Below are positions 46,347 to 57,393 of a stretch of 64,000 nt of DNA, piece by piece. The position numbers and the translations under genes are program-made. The notes under the pieces are model-generated. The model made no database searches. It worked only from the letters and a program-made list of their open reading frames with translations, and was not told the origin of the DNA. The stretch is from positions 974,287 to 1,038,286 of the forward strand of contig NW_002060955.1 of assembly GCF_000150275.1 (NCBI RefSeq), in the 5' to 3' direction. Position 1 is the stretch's first letter. Every line of letters begins with the position of its first letter. Source of the stretch: Trichoplax adhaerens (taxonomy: Eukaryota > Animalia > Placozoa).

Positions 46347-48719
46347 TGGTTATAAAATTTAACAGAATCTTAAAAAATATTAGCTGTTGTTTATATCACT
46401 AAATATACATTTTACCGAATGCGAGCGTGCGCGTGTAGAATTGATTATTAGTACTGTAATTTTATTATCTTACATTAATCATATTCACTATTGTAAAGCT
46501 ATGAAAGTAATAAATTGAAATTAATTGCCATCGCAATTTACTTTGATGATCTTGGCGATGGTATGAACGGTAATTCATAAACTAAAGTTCTTAAACAGCA
46601 AAATGAGTTTACTGTTTACCGTATCATTTATTTTTTGATTATTTCGATTCTAAAGATACTAACTGAATAGCACTAGAGGTAGCGTTATTAAAAATATTTT
46701 ATGATTTTATCTGTAACTTTTAAAATAAATATCCAACAATTGTTTCATATTATTCTTAAGAGTATGCAATGCTAACATTCATTTAGCTATTAAATTTAAA
46801 TTTAAACTTAGCTCTCATTACCGAATAAACATTGAGTCAGCCTAAATTGATGTACTTTTTATTGACTGGAAGTATTTTCAAGCAGTAAGCTATTAATTCA
46901 TATATCAATTTAATTTCGATCAGCTTTTAAAAAAATTTAGCACTTACTACTACGCTAAGCATTGTATTGCAATGTGTGTAGTTCTATAAATGAACTATCT
47001 CTTATCTATAATAAAATTAGATTATCGCGACGCTAATTATTTTATATGCGATATACTTAGATATTATTTTATCATCAAAAGACCTTGATAAAGTGTTTGA
47101 TATTTAGATAATTATGTAATTTGGTAATTTGATTAGAATAACTTTAGTGTAATTCCTAAATTCACATTAGTGTTTAAGACTGTTCATCTGCGAGTTACAG
47201 ACTAGCGAAACATGAATCCATGTACGTTTATCGTAGTAGTTACTTAGTGTTTTTTACGTTATTTATAATAGCCCAATTTAGAATTTGTTATATCATTCAG
47301 CCAAAAGCAGCCTTTCAATCTTGTCGTATTGTTTTATTCGATAAATTTAATTCTGTTTTAAAATTCAGTACATCAAATCAGAAGTAATTAACGTATAATT
47401 TTGCATGTTAAATTGCTAGTAAAGGCATATTTATGCGCTGACATTCCCTTCAACTTTTGCTCAAAGTTCAATAATTGTAGCAAGTTAGATAGAAAGAGAT
47501 ACAGATTGTATTCAATGCTTTGGTTCATACATTATTGGGAAGAAATTACGAACTTTACAGCTCTGGTATAGTTAATCAACCAGTTAAACGAATAAATGTT
47601 ATTGAAAATTGTTACTCAGTACAGTATCTTTCATATACATATTTCTGTTAGTCGTCATTATATCTACATGTATATCAGGATATGCTTGTTTTTACATTCT
47701 ACCTTAACTCAAGCAATAGCATGCTGCCGATGTGAATAAATTTTAGTTTCTGGATTAATAACGATAGCAATATTACTAAGATGCATTAAACATTTTACAA
47801 ATATTAATGTAAAATATGGGAAAAATTATTGTCTTCATGTTTATAGATCATGCAGCGTTAATTGCAATTACTGTTCATATCTCAAACCGTTAACTATGAG
47901 AGTTACTTTCACAGGTTATTAATTTTTATACTAATAAATCAGTCTAATAGAGCAAAGTGTAAGTATATAACATATATTTTGCCTAAATTGTTCAATAAAG
48001 CTAGTTAACTTTAGTTACATAGATGAAAACAGCACAGTTAATTTTCTATGATTGAAAGTTTAAAAAAAAATGGAAAGGCGTTACTAGTGTAGCAAATAAA
48101 AACGCAGGATAACAGAGCAATTTAAAATTTCTACGCAATCTATTTTTCGTGTCTAGTTCCGCATACTATATAACATGCATTAGAAGCTAAAAGCATAGCT
48201 AATCGTTCAGCAGTATCCAATTGAGCTATTCTATGATTTTGTATAGCTAATATTACAGAATCAGTAATATCAAATTAGCATATTTTATAATCCACAATAA
48301 CTGGCAGCATTAATACATTTAGCATACAAAGGAATAATTGATCATAAAAACCATATGTTGCTCTAGTAGAAATTATCAGCTATTAGAAGCAACCTATTCA
48401 TCATCTTCTATAACTTACTGCAATATTCATTAAAGCAAATTTCATCATAAACCAATTCAGAATAATGATGAAGTCAATTCCTAATTACTCTTATGGCAAT
48501 AAATATATAGCATTACATTCACTTGTTCTTATGTTAGGAGTTAAATTTGATCTTTGGTTATGCGATAAAATGTAAAATTAGATCATATCGTGTTTATAAA
48601 TGCCTTATTCAAGGCAATATTCAGGATTTTGATTTTATTCGAAATCGATTACATTTACGATTAATGATCAAATCTATCACTTCACTACATGAACCTCAAG
48701 TGGCAGTTATCGTCATGAA

Positions 48720-51700
48720 TTAAAACAACAGACCGTGTTCTTTAATATTTTTTTGTAGTATAACGTCGGTTACTGCAGCAAATACAAATACTATATTTTC
48801 TGTATCGGTAGCACACGTGAAATGAGAATAGATGGTCTTTTCTTTCCCATTACTATTGAGAGATATAAATTTCTTTTGTATATAACTTGTTGTTTCTTCA
48901 TAACTATTTGTTCCTAAAATTTAAGCGCAATTATAGGTTAGTGTATAGTTTTTTATGCTTAATTCAAGAAATAGATGTTGTGTATTAACGAATTATCTAA
49001 ACTAATTATAGCTCAGACTGTGCTTCCTAGATAATTATAGCTCATTTATTCTTTGCAATGGTTCATATTACAGTTTTTTACCATTATATTCCGGAAAACA
49101 AGTGGTAATAGGAGATTTTCTAATTTTTTCTTTAAAGATATCAGTCTTGTTTAAGAATAATATGATAGAGGTTTTCTTAAACCATTGATTATTACAGACT
49201 GAATCGAATAAATTTAGGCTTTCTTTCATTCGATTCTAATAGTTTTTTAATGAAACATGTATGTATTAGCGTTTAAAATATGATAATATTAAAAATGCTA
49301 TCAGCTGTAGCTAAACATATTCGAAGATTACAACTAATTTTCATCCGTTTTACCGTAAAATAGTCTTCCTGCAAGACCAAATCATATGCACTTAAAGCCG
49401 CGCAAAATATAACTGCAGTAACATTTTCAAAACAGTGTATCCATTTCCTTCTTTCACTACGCTGCCCACCGACATCGATCATTCTAGTTTGAGAAAGTAA
49501 TCGGTAGAAATAGAAGATTAAAGTCTATTACGTAGCCTTTGACGATAAAGTATGGCGATTGGCAGTTATGTAATGTAGTTATGAGTAAACAGAGCAGAAA
49601 TTGATGAGTGTAATGGAGAATATAGTGAAATCGACTACAATATTATTGCCGACTAAAAATTTACCTACAAGTAATTCTATATTGATATCTTACTTAAACT
49701 CAAGACCCTTGTATTCAAATTCTGTTTCTTTAATAGAGCTGGTTTTAACCCTTGCTCGTAATATATCTTGCTCCGATGGTAAATAAGAATCTTGTACCAG
49801 GCGATCTAAGTCATCTAGATAGCTAAAATAAATCGTGTTTCGTTAATACTGCAAAAGTTCCATTACCAATTCCGTCACTTTGTCTACTTGTTTATACCGT
49901 ACTTATTGGACATCGTATAAAAATTTATTATTAACTTGGTACAGATCTAGCAATTATACTGTATAGCCTCCATGAAATTTTTATATTCATTTACAGTAGT
50001 CATCGAATTTAATAGTTTATATGCATTCATTTTCCTTACTATGATGCAGAATCCATTAACTGATATTCTCTAGAGCGATTAAAACATTTCTGTACATCAG
50101 GATCATTCCACAATCGTTTCATAATCTTTTTTAACTCTGGCGTAACTTCATCAGGACTATCATATATTAATCTTAGAAAATCTTCAGCATCGATCTGATT
50201 GGACAAATCAATATTTCATTTTAATAACTTTTATTAAATTATCTATTTCTGCAATGAGCACTCCAACGATAATACTCACCTTTGTATGAGAACGTGAAAT
50301 ATCGATTTTTAAAACTTTCATAGCTTCAATAATTGCTTTTAACGAATAAATAGCATTACAATGGATTATTGATTTATATTGCTGTCGATCTTCATCTGAA
50401 TAGCCACTTTCATGGATAATCCTATATAAAATATATCGCAAGATAGATATGATAGAAGGGCATTATTGATATTATTTCATTCAGTAGCTCAAAACATTTA
50501 ATGGTTATTACTAGAAATAATGCAGAGTTGTAATTTAGAACATAGTAAAGAATTTTATTGATTTCGTACCGCATTTGCTTGGCAATTGTACTTTTACCAG
50601 ATTCACCAGCGCCTATTAATTAATAATTTGAACCAATGCGTAAAATTAGCAAATTGAAGTTGTAATTTTAATAGTAATGGGAGATGACTAACCCTAATTC
50701 TTTAACCTACACCTAGTGAACCAGTATTGTACTACTGTTACATCAGTAATGAAATAAGAATAGATAAATTCTGAAAGAAAATTATTTGCTATCATCCAAT
50801 AGTTCAATGATTCGGCAGAACCGAATCATGTGGAACTGATTAACTTTCCTATCTATATGCTCATCGCTGATGAAGAGGTGATGCAAATAAATTTTATAAA
50901 AATGCTCTACTATACAAGACTGTAAATTAAATAGCACATTTGATTAATTTTATTTTTTGTAATTTCTATTTGATAACTGAAAGCAGATATTTCAAAACTA
51001 TACAAGTTATTTTATATGCTTCATCATTATAAATTCTGAAAAATAAGAGTAGATAAGAGTGGAATAGTTACATGAAAGATGTTTTTTATTTACGTTGATT
51101 AAATCGTTATTTATTAGTAGTCGATTTCAAAGACGTAAAAGTTCCTAATGCGCCTTATGAGTCTTGATACACGATATTTCTTATTTCACTCAAGGGCCAA
51201 CTAGAAATTTTAATGTCGTCATATGTTATGCATAAATAGAGTATTATTATACTTGTTTGTTTGTTAAGACAGCACTCCATAAACATTGACAAATGACATT
51301 AGAATGAGTAAAAAATTTTCTTTCAATGTTCGATACTAAGCAAAAACGTTGACTTTCTTGTAAGGAATCGTCAATTTTTGATTGAAATGTATGCCAAACG
51401 TTTTACGTATTTAAAATAATTAACCAGCTATAAATTAATGATAACCTGCAGCTATGACTACTTTCTTAAAAGGGATAACAATAATAACAATATCACAAAC
51501 AACAACAACAAGGAAAGAAGAATTGCTGTATCAGTTGGTTAAAACTACTGTATGCTGGCCTTCTTGGTGTAGTCTGAAATGTCTATACAGTATTTGAGAT
51601 TTCATTACTAATAATGATGTTTAAATCAAGTATTACGAAATCGATAGTTTAGACCATAAAATTGTTCGAACTTGTATAAAAATTCGAAATGAGACTATTT

Positions 51701-54700
51701 TACTTAGAGTTTTCCCACAGTCTTTATTAAAAATCAAATCGTAATGCCGCTCATATTTATTCTAATGCCATTTGCTAGAAAAGGAAAGTCTAGCCTGTAG
51801 TAAACTTAAGATCAGATCTAGTTATGGCCAATTCATTGCAATCCTTAGAAAAGAGGTATAAAGCTTATAATTGTAATTTTTTAATCATTAAAGCAATTCA
51901 GAAAGCATAAATTATACTAAGAAAGTAATGGGTTCAAAAACGATCAAGATCTAATCCATGATATAGGTGCCAGATTGACAATTTGTTAAATTTGGGGAAT
52001 TTATGATGAAATTAAGTAAGCAACAAACTACTCTTTCGAAATGATTTTACAAGTATCTAGTCTTGCTAATTCTAATGTAAATTTATGAGATAGATACTCA
52101 CTTGCGCAACTAACTGGCTAAGTCCTGAATTATATCTATACCAGATTATATCACCACACAAATAAACACTATAAGATATTCCGGTTAAAACACTGCCCTT
52201 CCCAAGTAAATGCTTAGAATATATTCTTGTAGTATAATAAACTATCCTAAGTGTAATAGATCGCACGTTTTTATCCAACATCTACATCGATATTTATTTC
52301 AAGGGCAACTTAATACCTACGAGTATAGTAATATGATAACGCATCTCTAAAACGATAATGTAGGTAGTTGGACTACAAGATTACCTAAATATTTATTCAA
52401 GGAAATGAAATTTAGTATACTGTATAAATTGTATTATTTTGGCAGTGATGCCTCTATTAGGCCTATAAATGATTACTAGATTAGCCTAACAGGAGCTGGC
52501 TTTCAATTGGAACCACTAGAGCAACATAAGCGTAATTAGATAGCAGCTCGACAAGCTAAACCACTCCAGTAATTCTAAGAAAAATTGTCACCCGATTATA
52601 CAGCATAAGGTATATAAAGTAAATCCCCCGCCGCTAGAGATGTAATTATTAAATTGCATATCGGTAGAAGAACGAATTTATATTAAACTCGCACAGCGAA
52701 GTTAAGAAAAAATTAAATTTTTTGTCATTTTTTCGATGTATATTGCTGCTTTAAGCTTCATATCGTTTACTACTGTATGCTTATTTTATTTCTAAGAAAG
52801 GACTGTAAATATTTTATGATATCCTTCACTTACGCGGATATAAATTTATGTCACGGATTTAAAACTAAATTAGCTGCTCTAATTTTAGTTGCGTATCTGC
52901 CCTCAATCCTATCTCTAGAAATCGTAATCTTTCATGTGCCTTTTCTTGCTACTACGCTCCGTCCTCTTATACATTTGTTCTTGCTTGCCTATAAACTGAG
53001 TCTCACCTAATTGCTGCCACTAAGCCGAACGATATTTTCCTGTCGTCTTGATCTACCTTGTAGTACATAATCAAGAGATCTTAGTCATAATATAACTAGA
53101 GAAAATTTAAACCCGTCTTTGCCCTGAATCAACACTGATTATGGGTTGAAACCAATGTATTTCTAGTCAAAAAATTCCATATCTTTCCGTACAATTAAAG
53201 TATATTTAAAGCCTGTTCAGCTTCCATACATTTTAAAATAAGGCTTTTGGCGATAGCGCTTAATCAACACTAATGACACGGTTTATATTAATTCAAAGTT
53301 TCCTTAGCCGGAGCGTAGGCTCTTATGTACTGGTAAATGCTCCGATTGCAAATATACTTTTAATTAGCAAGTATTTTGTATAAGTTTCTTTCTTGCTTAC
53401 AATTTAAACTAATGACTACTAACACATGTAGACTAGCATACTAACATACTGGATAGCAAACAAAGTATCGTCAGATGTAACGGTATTTGTTGTTATTTAT
53501 TCAGCATTGTACTGTAGGGATAAAGGATTAATTAGAATATGGTATATTCTGCATGCGTGCTGAAAAGAGGATTTGATGCGGAAATAATATCCCACAATGC
53601 GCAATGGATTAGCTGTAGAATTAAAGAAAATTATTGTAGCCCACCTTCCATACTACAGTTCGAATACTGGGAATAATAATGCGATGAATGACTGAGTTTA
53701 CAAAAAGATTTTAGAGGCTATCGTTACTACCCATGATATTCCGATGAAAACATACGCGATATGTTCATGATCTGTTCTTGAACTGGTCGTTCCTAGATTA
53801 AATTCACGATAACTAAATATCTTCATCGTTGGCATCAATATGATATTGAACAGTTTTTTGACGAAACAGTTTGGGCTTTCTCGAAGCCCCTTTATCCCCT
53901 CTTCAATCAAATTTCTATTTATGAATGCTATCAAATACTTTTACTTCATGACAATAGACCAATAAACTATATTATAGGTATTTATACATAGATATCTATA
54001 ATCCTGCACAAAGATTAACTCCTTAAACTCCTATAGAAATTCTTTCATGATAGTAACCTACTAACAGAGGAAGTAACAAATTACAGCGTTGCTGAAATGG
54101 ATTATAATGTTAATGGTTACTACTAACAAAACATGGATAGAATACTCATAGTGTCTCTGCTATTTTAATTCTCTATGAATAAGTGTATAGCTAAGAATAA
54201 AATATGATTTGTAAGCGTTTATCGATTTGTAGGACTTGAACTGTTGTCTACATGTGAGTGAAGGCGGCAACATTTCGTGATAATGATTTTGATTACTCTA
54301 ACACTGACCTAGTTTTAAGAACAGTTAATCAGTAACATTTCATGCTGTAACTATAATATACATTCTTAGCTAATAAAAATGAAGAAATGAGCTAGCGATT
54401 GATATACGAGTATTTTCAGAGTCAACATAATGGTATATTTCCGCTTAGAACAGTGCTACAGTTAGGTAGAGGTGTATTGTAATATCAAAAGCTAAAAATT
54501 TCTACTAGCGTAAAACTATCTGCAATGCCGCATTTTATTGTACAATAATATACCAACTTCCATCATTTTGCTAATCAGGTGAGGAAAGTTATTAAATTCA
54601 GTACTGAATCAATACTATTTCATTTAACAGTAACTTTATTACCGAATAAATGAAGAAAAACAAAGAATTGAGTTTAATACTTAGAATCAAAAACATGTCA

Positions 54701-57393
54701 TTTCGATATTGAATTCACGAAGGACTGATAGTACAAAGCAGTCATATTTCTATTTTAGCCTTTTATAAATGAACAATAAACCTATCAGTTGATTGCATAC
54801 GATCAGTCATAAGCTAGATTATAGTCGAATAGTGTAATTTAAAATCCTAATCTATGTGAAATAAGTTTTTTTTCATTTGCTTCATTACGTAGAATAAAAG
54901 TATTTACTTCATCTATTTTACGATTTCCTATTACAGATATCTACGAATAAATAGTTTCAATAAACTTAGACAAGTGCTCTTAAACTAAGGAGTAGAGAGA
55001 AGGAGAAGATAAAAAGTCAATTGACTATAGTATTGCGTATTTGAAATCTCATTTATTCGAAGTATGACATCAAATTATACCAGTATTAGCTTAATACCAT
55101 AGAGAGTAAGATTGTTTATAATATTGTATAGCTATAGCCTTATCGATATTATTGGAATATAGTTGTTGAAATGTGTCAAAAATGTAACTATTACTAAAAT
55201 TGGAAAGCTTGATTATCTGTAGTATTCAACTTTATATAATGTAGTAAATGGAAAAATAAGTTGAAAACGCTTTTCAGCTGCTACGATATAGATTTAGTGA
55301 GCATTGGATATGAAGCATGAAAATTTTAACGTTATGATAGAAACAGAGTTCAATTTCTGATCAAGCATCTCAGATACTGTGATATAATGCAATATTGAAT
55401 TAATTTATTAATAATATTCTTCTGCCTACGAGATATTACCCGTGGGAAAAAATGTCATCGAAAATTGTTATCACACAGTTTTGAGGAACCAATTACTAAC
55501 AAATAGTTCGACATAGAATAAGAAACGGATCGCTGCTATAATTTTCCTTGATAGGATTGCCAACTAATCTTGTATGCCCGTGTATTAATACCATTTTAGA
55601 AAGGTATTTCATTATCATGACTTATATCTTTTATTCTTAGGGTGACAATTACTTCATAATCTTAATACTGTTACTATCACATTTCGATATGCATGATTAT
55701 TCTTTATAGCATTTTATTAATAGCTTTATTTTCTTCTATTTCTACCGTCTCATTCGTAAAATTGCTGGAGCAAATTCTTGGATGATAAGTGAAACAAATC
55801 AAAGTGTTTTTCTGTTGTTGAATAATGGTAATCTAACGTAGCGTAATTCAGTGGCCTACTTTCTTAGCTTCCTTTACCTCATGCTGGTATAGTAGTTTTG
55901 CATACGTACAGTTAAAGCTAATAGATGCATTAATTTGCTTCTTTTTATGTTTCTGAATATGAGTTTTTTCTTCATATTCAATTCCTTAATATTAGCAGGT
56001 CTACCAACGACAGACATGACCATATTGATGGCAGTTATAAAAAAACAATATTATAGCGAAATGTACTTAACTTTTAATGAGACAAGCAAATGTATAACCT
56101 GTAAAATAAACTACTTTCCACGATGGTATACAAATCAATTCATAGTTTATCTAGACAGGAAAGGATGAGAGTTTAAAAATTTAGTCCAGCCTTTTCTAAC
56201 GTTTGAGATAATTTCATATCTATGGAACAGATATCATAAAACAATCTTTATGAGGATTATAATTCTGCAACTCCAATGCTAGGTGCTAAGTATGGATGCA
56301 GTTGAGCTTTAATATTACAATTACGGTCGATTTCATGTTATATATGAACGAGGCCTACCCATCTTTAATAGGATTTACTATTATATAAAAGATTCATGTC
56401 AAGATTGAGTGTAAGAAAGTGTACTTGTTGATTAACGATTCTAAGTTCCATACGTAAAGATAGTTTTAACTAGAAAGTTCAATTTATGGGCTTCATCTCG
56501 ACATTCAATTCATTTTTTGTGATATTTTAATATGAAATCCATAGAATAAATAGGCTAAGCAGTATATCATCAGTTCCTTGAACGAACAATTACATCAAGA
56601 GAAAATGTGTTCATCGATTTGAATCATAAAAACTAATGCGTAAAATTTTTGATATAGCCGATCGTTCACAAAGTCCATAATGGATAATTATTTCTTAGTA
56701 AATACATTCAAGACACAAAAGGAAAAATAATACCGATTGCCATTCTCCGAAGATAGGATCAGTATCAATACTTTAAAACGTTATCCTATCCCTATATGCT
56801 TAATGCGTAATCAAAAGGCAACACTAGTAGGAAAGGGGTACCGTTCAGTCCGATCAGAAAATAAGACATGTAAAGGGTGGAAAGTAAATTTTATAACGTT
56901 ACACTGTATAAGTAATCTTTCTATATAGATTGTAAATATAGTTAAATAACCATAGCTTCCAGTTAAAGTAAAAATGAGTAGAAAAGTTATTGATTGTGGA
57001 GTAGTATATATATATATAGTCGATCCGTATTTGTACTGCTATGAAATTAAGACTAATCACATCCTAAATAATGCTAGAGTTTTCTGAAGTATTCTATCTA
57101 TGATAATGGAAAATTGTCAGGGAAAAATGGATGATTCTCACTGATGTACTTAAAAAAAAATTTCCTAGTCTTTTTAAAACTCGCCTTCATTTTATAGTAC
57201 ACTACAGTATCTACTATTAAAATCAATGAACGAATATTGTCTGATTTCATTTATGGATTGAAAGTAAGTACTTACCTAGAAGTAACAACTTTACTTCACT
57301 TAAGGACTTGTCTTTTTCATTTTGAATTTTCTTATCAATGTCTGTGCTCTTTTCTCGGGCGGCTTTATCTTCACCACTAACTGTAATACCCAT
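48720..57393 (-). CDS. Heterotrimeric G protein alpha subunit, divergent Gi/o family, 354 aa, 8 exons
   Basis: Exons 57276-57393, 50570-50612, 50280-50421, 50040-50194, 49694-49822, 49354-49483, 49082-49235, 48720-48913 (118/43/142/155/129/130/154/194 nt, total 1065). Motifs [30 protein letters not shown]; C-terminus [10 protein letters not shown]. The exon pattern matches vertebrate GNAI/GNAO. Confidence 0.95.

Follow-up and report, generated by a model that had tools for sequence, protein, structure and literature searches.

A Gi-class G-alpha gene of the placozoan Trichoplax adhaerens was found to encode a serine at the switch-I position where Galpha-i1 has the RGS-contact glycine, Gly183. 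The gene lies on the minus strand of the window, by which I mean the whole stretch of 64,000 nucleotides of contig NW_002060955.1 that was analysed. It has already been catalogued as preGNAIc (PMC5896119), and it is its switch-I state that is described here. The gene is intact, spliced and expressed, its catalytic residues are kept, and related fragments from more diverged sources also have a residue other than glycine at the same position. On balance, and by analogy with engineered mutants, preGNAIc probably constitutes a Gi-class branch on which canonical RGS proteins have little or no accelerating effect.

The preGNAIc gene and its switch I

As listed in Table 1, the gene consists of eight exons on the minus strand from 57393 to 48720, and its coding sequence is 1065 nt in length, that is, 354 codons and a stop codon. 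Open stretches of the minus strand were matched to the Pfam profile PF00503, exon borders were set by hand at GT-AG sites, and homology and motifs were analysed on the exons one at a time, not on the joined protein. By sequence reading, all seven introns are GT-AG introns. Intron 1 is 6,663 nt long (50613-57275 of the window, minus strand), and each of the others is 85-217 nt in length. Positions 26-333 of PF00503, helical domain included, are matched in order by seven exon pieces. Three of these pieces are above the cut-off alone, and exon pieces were also found by the genome scan. All of the G-alpha boxes (GAGESGKST, the switch-I Arg178 and Thr181, DVGGQ, NKTD, and TCAT) are present in the exon translations.

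Table 1. Exons and switch-I codons of preGNAIc (window positions) and G-alpha loci of the T. adhaerens genome (contig positions)
Feature	Position	Strand	Content and evidence
Exon 1	57276..57393	-	starts with MGITVS; ends with VKLLLL and the first base of a Gly codon; donor GTAAGT
Exon 2	50570..50612	-	P-loop GAGESGKST (G1 box), canonical; PF00503 match; joint 50420/50569 (cut +1) in three RNA or probable RNA runs
Exon 3	50280..50421	-	start of the helical domain; joint 50194/50280 in spliced contigs
Exon 4	50040..50194	-	helical domain; joint 49822/50040 in spliced contigs
Exon 5	49694..49822	-	linker 2 and switch I; joints 49483/49694 and 49822/50040 in X15, X17, and X19
Exon 6	49354..49483	-	switch II, DVGGQR at 49476-49459; PF00503 80.9 bits; joint 49235/49354 in X17
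Exon 7	49082..49235	-	switch III to G4 box, NKTD at 49151-49140; joint 48912/49081 (cut +1) in three runs
Exon 8	48720..48913	-	G5 box TCAT at 48818-48807; C-terminus KEHGLLF; stop TAA at 48722-48720
AGG Arg	49752-49750	-	equals R178
GTT Val	49749-49747	-	codon reading
AAA Lys	49746-49744	-	codon reading
ACC Thr	49743-49741	-	equals T181
AGC Ser	49740-49738	-	replaces T182
TCT Ser	49737-49735	-	replaces the RGS-contact Gly, G183
ATT Ile	49734-49732	-	codon reading
AAA Lys	49731-49729	-	replaces V185
Two adjacent canonical Gi copies	C1402:888.6-892.9k and 905.7-907.1k	+	genome scan
Copy under study	same contig, about 116 kb beyond the Gi pair	opposite to the Gi pair	genome scan
Go-like copy and Gs	C1411, about 740 kb apart		genome scan
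Gq copy	one locus		genome scan
Tandem G12 pair	C1413:8338330-8342895 (L001/L036) and 8346792-8351593 (L002)		genome scan

The PDB matches and the spliced contigs place the protein in the Gi/o class: its nearest relatives are of the Gi class, and it has eight coding exons, which is the layout typical of Gi genes. In phmmer searches against PDB chains, the best match of exon 5 was Gi1 (58% identity to human Gi1), and that of exon 8 was Gz (70.9 bits, versus about 67 bits for Gi). Human Galpha-i1 is likewise 354 residues long, and canonical Galpha-i proteins (human GNAI1 and the Trichoplax copies) have in common with preGNAIc this length, the eight-exon layout, the G1-G5 boxes, and Gly2. In contrast to them, preGNAIc has TSSIK instead of TTGIV in switch I and a C-terminus that is one residue longer (HGLLF), and it lacks two cysteines. 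The C-terminal KEHGLLF sequence has no Cys at position -4, the pertussis-toxin site, and the N-terminal MGITVS sequence has no Cys3 for palmitoylation. Since Gz and Gt are also without one or the other of these cysteines, their absence is no bar to membership in the Gi/o class. The Gly2 and Ser6 residues of MGITVS are compatible with N-myristoylation.

In a sequence-only reading of the window, a Gly-to-Ser substitution had been reported in exon 5 at positions 49729-49752, with the strand left unstated. The coordinates proved exact, the strand is minus, and the exon number agrees with the position in the eight-exon gene model. Read directly from 49752 to 49729, the minus strand is AGG GTT AAA ACC AGC TCT ATT AAA, which is translated as R-V-K-T-S-S-I-K. 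The 43-residue exon 5 was aligned without gaps to residues 155-197 of Galpha-i1 by phmmer against all PDB chains. Both the codons and this alignment bear out that the TCT serine stands for the glycine, and TCT indeed differs at two positions from every GGN codon. The Arg of the catalytic site, the Thr that binds Mg, and the Gln of switch II, which had been described as intact, are so in the exon translations and in the alignment. In total, the alignment of exon 5 gives three switch-I changes relative to Galpha-i1: T182S, G183S, and V185K. The first and the third had gone unremarked. In switch II, which is encoded by exon 6, the Gi residues Q204, S206, E207, K210, and H213 are all present, with an Arg in place of K209. 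RGS-insensitive G-alphas are a functional category that was defined with mutants, by the loss of RGS binding and RGS-stimulated GTPase at a normal intrinsic GTPase. The sequence mark of these mutants, a Ser at the Gly183 position combined with intact catalytic residues, is present in preGNAIc.

Expression and orthologues

Is the serine codon real, and is the gene alive? One might suspect an error of assembly or base calling, or else a duplicate that is drifting as a pseudogene, as the copy has been regarded by Lokits et al. as a lineage-specific local duplication (PMC5896119) and lies on a long branch. Twenty public runs from seven studies, derived from two organisms (A and B), cover the stretch. 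Four of these runs, from four studies and both organisms, were compared over the region 48600-50700 of the window. X19 (organism B) is on record as RNA. X15 and X17, which belong to different studies of organism A, are guessed to be RNA, and X7 (organism B) is guessed to be DNA. No alternative letter was found in the codons at 49729-49752 in any of the four runs, and thus the codons are identical in RNA-type and DNA contigs. In the spliced contigs of X15, X17, and X19, the joints lie exactly at introns 2-7. In the same three runs, the RNA contigs have a loose end at 50615 whose sequence, once reverse-complemented, is that of the 3′ end of exon 1, which means that exon 1 is joined to exon 2 across the 6.66-kb intron. 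Thus, all seven introns are used.

Nine coding differences among the runs were recognized by a codon reading of the run-difference table. Eight of them are synonymous (positions 49717, 49798, 49465, 48777, 48861, 48728, 50304, and 50364), while the ninth, an Asn-to-Ile change at 48850, was seen in one low-depth contig. The spliced contigs and the synonymous-to-nonsynonymous ratio of 8:1 indicate that the gene is expressed, properly spliced, and under purifying selection. The earlier claim of a wild-type G-alpha with a natural Ser at the Gly183 position holds in this respect. An error or a decaying gene is extremely improbable, given the same codons in two organisms and four studies, the complete frame with seven GT-AG introns all in use, the 8:1 ratio, and the conserved orthologues described below; the codons, the splicing, and the ratio seen in the run contigs effectively refute it. 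As a separate observation, an RNA contig of X17, 2416 nt in length, extends about 1.2 kb past position 48600 of the window, that is, 3′ of the stop codon. This extension implies either that the 3′ UTR is long or that transcription reads through into the neighbouring gene.

Is the loss of the glycine peculiar to one genome? I performed an exhaustive phmmer search of 1.84 billion representative proteins with exon 5. The best match, P0001, is an 82-residue ORF fragment from Logan contigs that is 81% identical and reads RVETTSIKE. When P0001 was used as the query, P0152 (ENA) was retrieved, which reads RVETTAIKE. With a three-sequence profile made of exon 5, P0001, and P0152, the latter two score 116-125 bits, three further fragments score 89-90 bits, and proteins with a single matching exon score up to about 74 bits. 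A homologue search with exon 5 alone, confined to proteins of 0.55-1.75 times the query length, returned one unrelated fragment only. Residue 183 is Ser, Ser, and Ala in exon 5, P0001, and P0152, respectively, and Ile-Lys-Glu follows in all three. Of the 259 switch-I motifs in the 251 G-alpha proteins and fragments that were retrieved, 252 carry a Gly at position 183, and Lys at position 185 is confined to P0001 and P0152. The retrieved set contains a few other exceptions to Gly. P0120, a Logan fragment of 162 aa that otherwise resembles Gi, naturally carries a Ser in place of Gly183 (RVKTTSISE). P0115 and P0136 have an Arg there, and in the chytrid tandem G-alpha P0006 the residues are Lys and Asn.

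Since a residue other than Gly (Ser or Ala) is common to the preGNAIc orthologues, the loss is a feature of the lineage and not of one genome. The Gly183 loss together with the Lys185 gain is, across these aligned fragments, a conserved signature of the preGNAIc lineage. Organism B shows an identical protein sequence across exon 5, and thus P0001 and P0152 come from more diverged sources; my guess is that these are other placozoan genera. The existence of diverged orthologue fragments means that the copy is older than one species, which contradicts the reading that it is local to T. adhaerens. The view of this paralog as a duplication private to T. adhaerens is revised in this respect.

The RGS interface

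The sequence-only reading had equated the Gly-to-Ser change with the known RGS-insensitive mutation, and two papers back this. Masuho et al. (2020) used the G-to-S change as the RGS-insensitive mutation in Gi1-3, Go, Gz, Gq, G11, G14, and G15 (PMC7572916), and the mutation is also mentioned in a 2025 study (PMC12505447). Engineered Galpha-i1 G183S, Galpha-o G184S, Galpha-q G188S, and yeast Gpa1 G302S have the same change at the same site as preGNAIc, with the catalytic Arg, Thr, and Gln intact. When they are compared by sequence, the engineered mutants are single laboratory changes in canonical proteins, whereas preGNAIc represents a natural, conserved state with T182S and V185K in addition. 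Among the papers retrieved in literature searches, none reports a G-alpha with a natural G-to-S change or describes this switch I of preGNAIc, and no data were found on the effect of Ala at the Gly183 position on RGS binding.

The 2025 study on Galpha-s informs on the other two changes. F208, D229, and Q236 were found to be necessary and sufficient for the RGS resistance of Galpha-s (PMC12505447). F208, the counterpart of V185, attenuates RGS GAP activity, and thus the V185 position matters for RGS action. Galpha-s naturally has a Ser at the T182 position and turns fully RGS-sensitive with that Ser unchanged (PMC12505447), so that T182S is probably harmless. Galpha-s is a natural G-alpha without canonical RGS action, partly via its switch-I F208. 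However, it keeps the Gly, and its resistance depends mainly on D229 of switch II; in preGNAIc, switch II is Gi-like with S206 kept, and it is the Gly that is lost.

The following explanation is proposed. preGNAIc is a Gi-class G-alpha paralog that is so far known only from placozoans. GTP binding and hydrolysis at the intrinsic rate are expected because its nucleotide-binding and catalytic elements are canonical. Its switch I has lost the Gly that packs against the RGS domain, with Ser here and Ser or Ala in the orthologues, and the lineage has fixed a Lys at the V185 position as well. Canonical RGS domains would probably bind preGNAIc poorly and speed up its GTPase weakly or not at all. The off-rate of this placozoan Gi-type branch may then be set by intrinsic hydrolysis, not by RGS proteins. 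RGS insensitivity of preGNAIc is a reasonable expectation from the behaviour of the engineered G-to-S mutants, and its signals may then last longer.

What do the RGS proteins of this animal look like? The RGS profile PF00615 gave eight exon matches at about six loci in the genome scan. At least two RGS domains, at C1408:~4525.1-4525.7k and C1413:~2830.0-2830.8k, have a canonical motif facing T182/G183 (the motifs being SEYSEEN..FW and SEFSDEN..FW), and four other RGS-family loci are divergent or were read only in part. These loci bear on the possibility, which I consider somewhat unlikely, that preGNAIc is still under GAP control: a placozoan RGS protein, another GAP, or an effector-GAP would have co-adapted to the Ser/Ala-Ile-Lys switch I, and the substitution would alter the identity of the regulator without abolishing regulation. 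One of the four divergent or partly read loci could be such a matched partner, and the S182 and K185 residues, which the Gly-only engineered mutants do not have, could reshape switch I in a manner that keeps RGS binding. The persistence of the Ser/Ala-Ile-Lys signature in three lineages resembles a maintained interface rather than drift, and full conservation is seen in switch II, which forms the other half of the surface contacted by RGS proteins. However, the binding of G-beta-gamma and effectors accounts equally well for an unchanged switch II, both well-read RGS domains are canonical at the facing motif, and a compensating change was identified in none of the RGS domains at the genome loci.

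It is also conceivable, but quite unlikely, that the substitution is near-neutral. Canonical RGS proteins would still act on preGNAIc, and what sets the paralog apart from Gi would mainly be its coupling to receptors or effectors, owing to a divergent helical domain and the KEHGLLF C-terminus. RGS proteins do tolerate T182S in the Galpha-s background (PMC12505447), and other natural G-alphas without the Gly exist, namely P0115, P0136, P0006, P0120, and the two G12-class paralogs of this genome. In addition, preGNAIc has diverged over its entire length, as shown in the next section. Nevertheless, the G-to-S change blocks RGS action in all G-alpha subtypes tested (PMC7572916), and the added V185K is at a position where a change is known to weaken RGS action (PMC12505447). 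Poor acceleration by canonical RGS proteins is the reading preferred here.

Relation to other G-alpha genes

A scan of the genome (105.6 Mb, 1414 contigs) with PF00503 gave eight G-alpha loci (Table 1). Lokits et al. (2018, BMC Evol Biol 18:51; PMC5896119) gave the name preGNAIc to a third Gi-class copy of T. adhaerens, which has eight coding exons with split codons and lies about 116 kb from two adjacent copies on one scaffold. The locus arrangement found here agrees with theirs; the gene under study is preGNAIc. In their tree, preGNAIc is near GNAZ, at the base of that clade. They saw neither a gene of this kind in other non-vertebrate animals nor synteny with RSPH14, argued against GNAZ orthology, and judged the copy to be a lineage-specific local duplication, without discussing its switch I or RGS proteins. 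The present account differs from theirs on the age of the copy, which exceeds that of a single species, and in describing the loss of Gly183.

In a per-exon tblastn analysis, the nearest paralog was the canonical Gi copy at 906k, with 57-82% identity per exon in exons 3-8 and 12 of 13 residues in exon 2. Divergence extends over the entire length of the paralog, which has about 62-67% identity to the nearest Gi copy. The tandem G12 pair is also without the switch-I Gly, reading RKATTNIVE (Asn) and RKATKTIVE (Thr), so that three of the eight G-alpha genes of this genome have a residue other than Gly at this position.

Vertebrate Galpha-z resembles preGNAIc in being a Gi-class protein without the pertussis-toxin Cys, and exon 8 of preGNAIc is marginally closest to Gz. 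Within the Gi family, Gz is the member with a slow off-rate, and its slowness is due to a changed P-loop. The Gz-type P-loop is absent from preGNAIc, which has the canonical GAGESGKST instead. Furthermore, Galpha-z keeps Gly183, as its G183S mutant had to be engineered (PMC7572916), while preGNAIc does not. A broader reading is offered tentatively and may well go too far. Placozoans might keep one Gi-class alpha subunit specifically for signalling that canonical RGS proteins do not curtail, a slow-off channel that arose independently of vertebrate Gz through Gly183 to Ser/Ala plus V185K, on the G-alpha side of the interface. Together with the G12 paralogs, this might mean that early-branching animals tuned signal duration by switch-I edits and not by RGS diversification.

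G183S-type mutants are a standard tool for revealing the roles of RGS proteins in vivo, and a conserved and expressed wild-type counterpart would be a natural experiment of the same kind. If the preferred reading is true, a Gi-type pathway can operate in an animal lineage with no RGS protein to shut it off. Alternatively, the RGS interface can be rebuilt around a switch I without glycine. Either outcome informs the evolution of G-alpha/RGS selectivity, and the case is readily testable, with a protein of 354 residues and few candidate RGS partners.

Two minor observations concern the other copies. Both canonical Gi copies (C1402:888635-892862 and 905734-907092) match the plus strand, and thus they are arranged head to tail, whereas the placozoan Gi pair has been given as head to head (PMC5896119). 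The copy named preGNAO by Lokits et al. (C1411:4713311-4716041, L034) has the switch-I sequence RLRTTGVNQ, in which the Gly is kept, an Asn is at the V185 position, and a Gln replaces the otherwise conserved Glu186.
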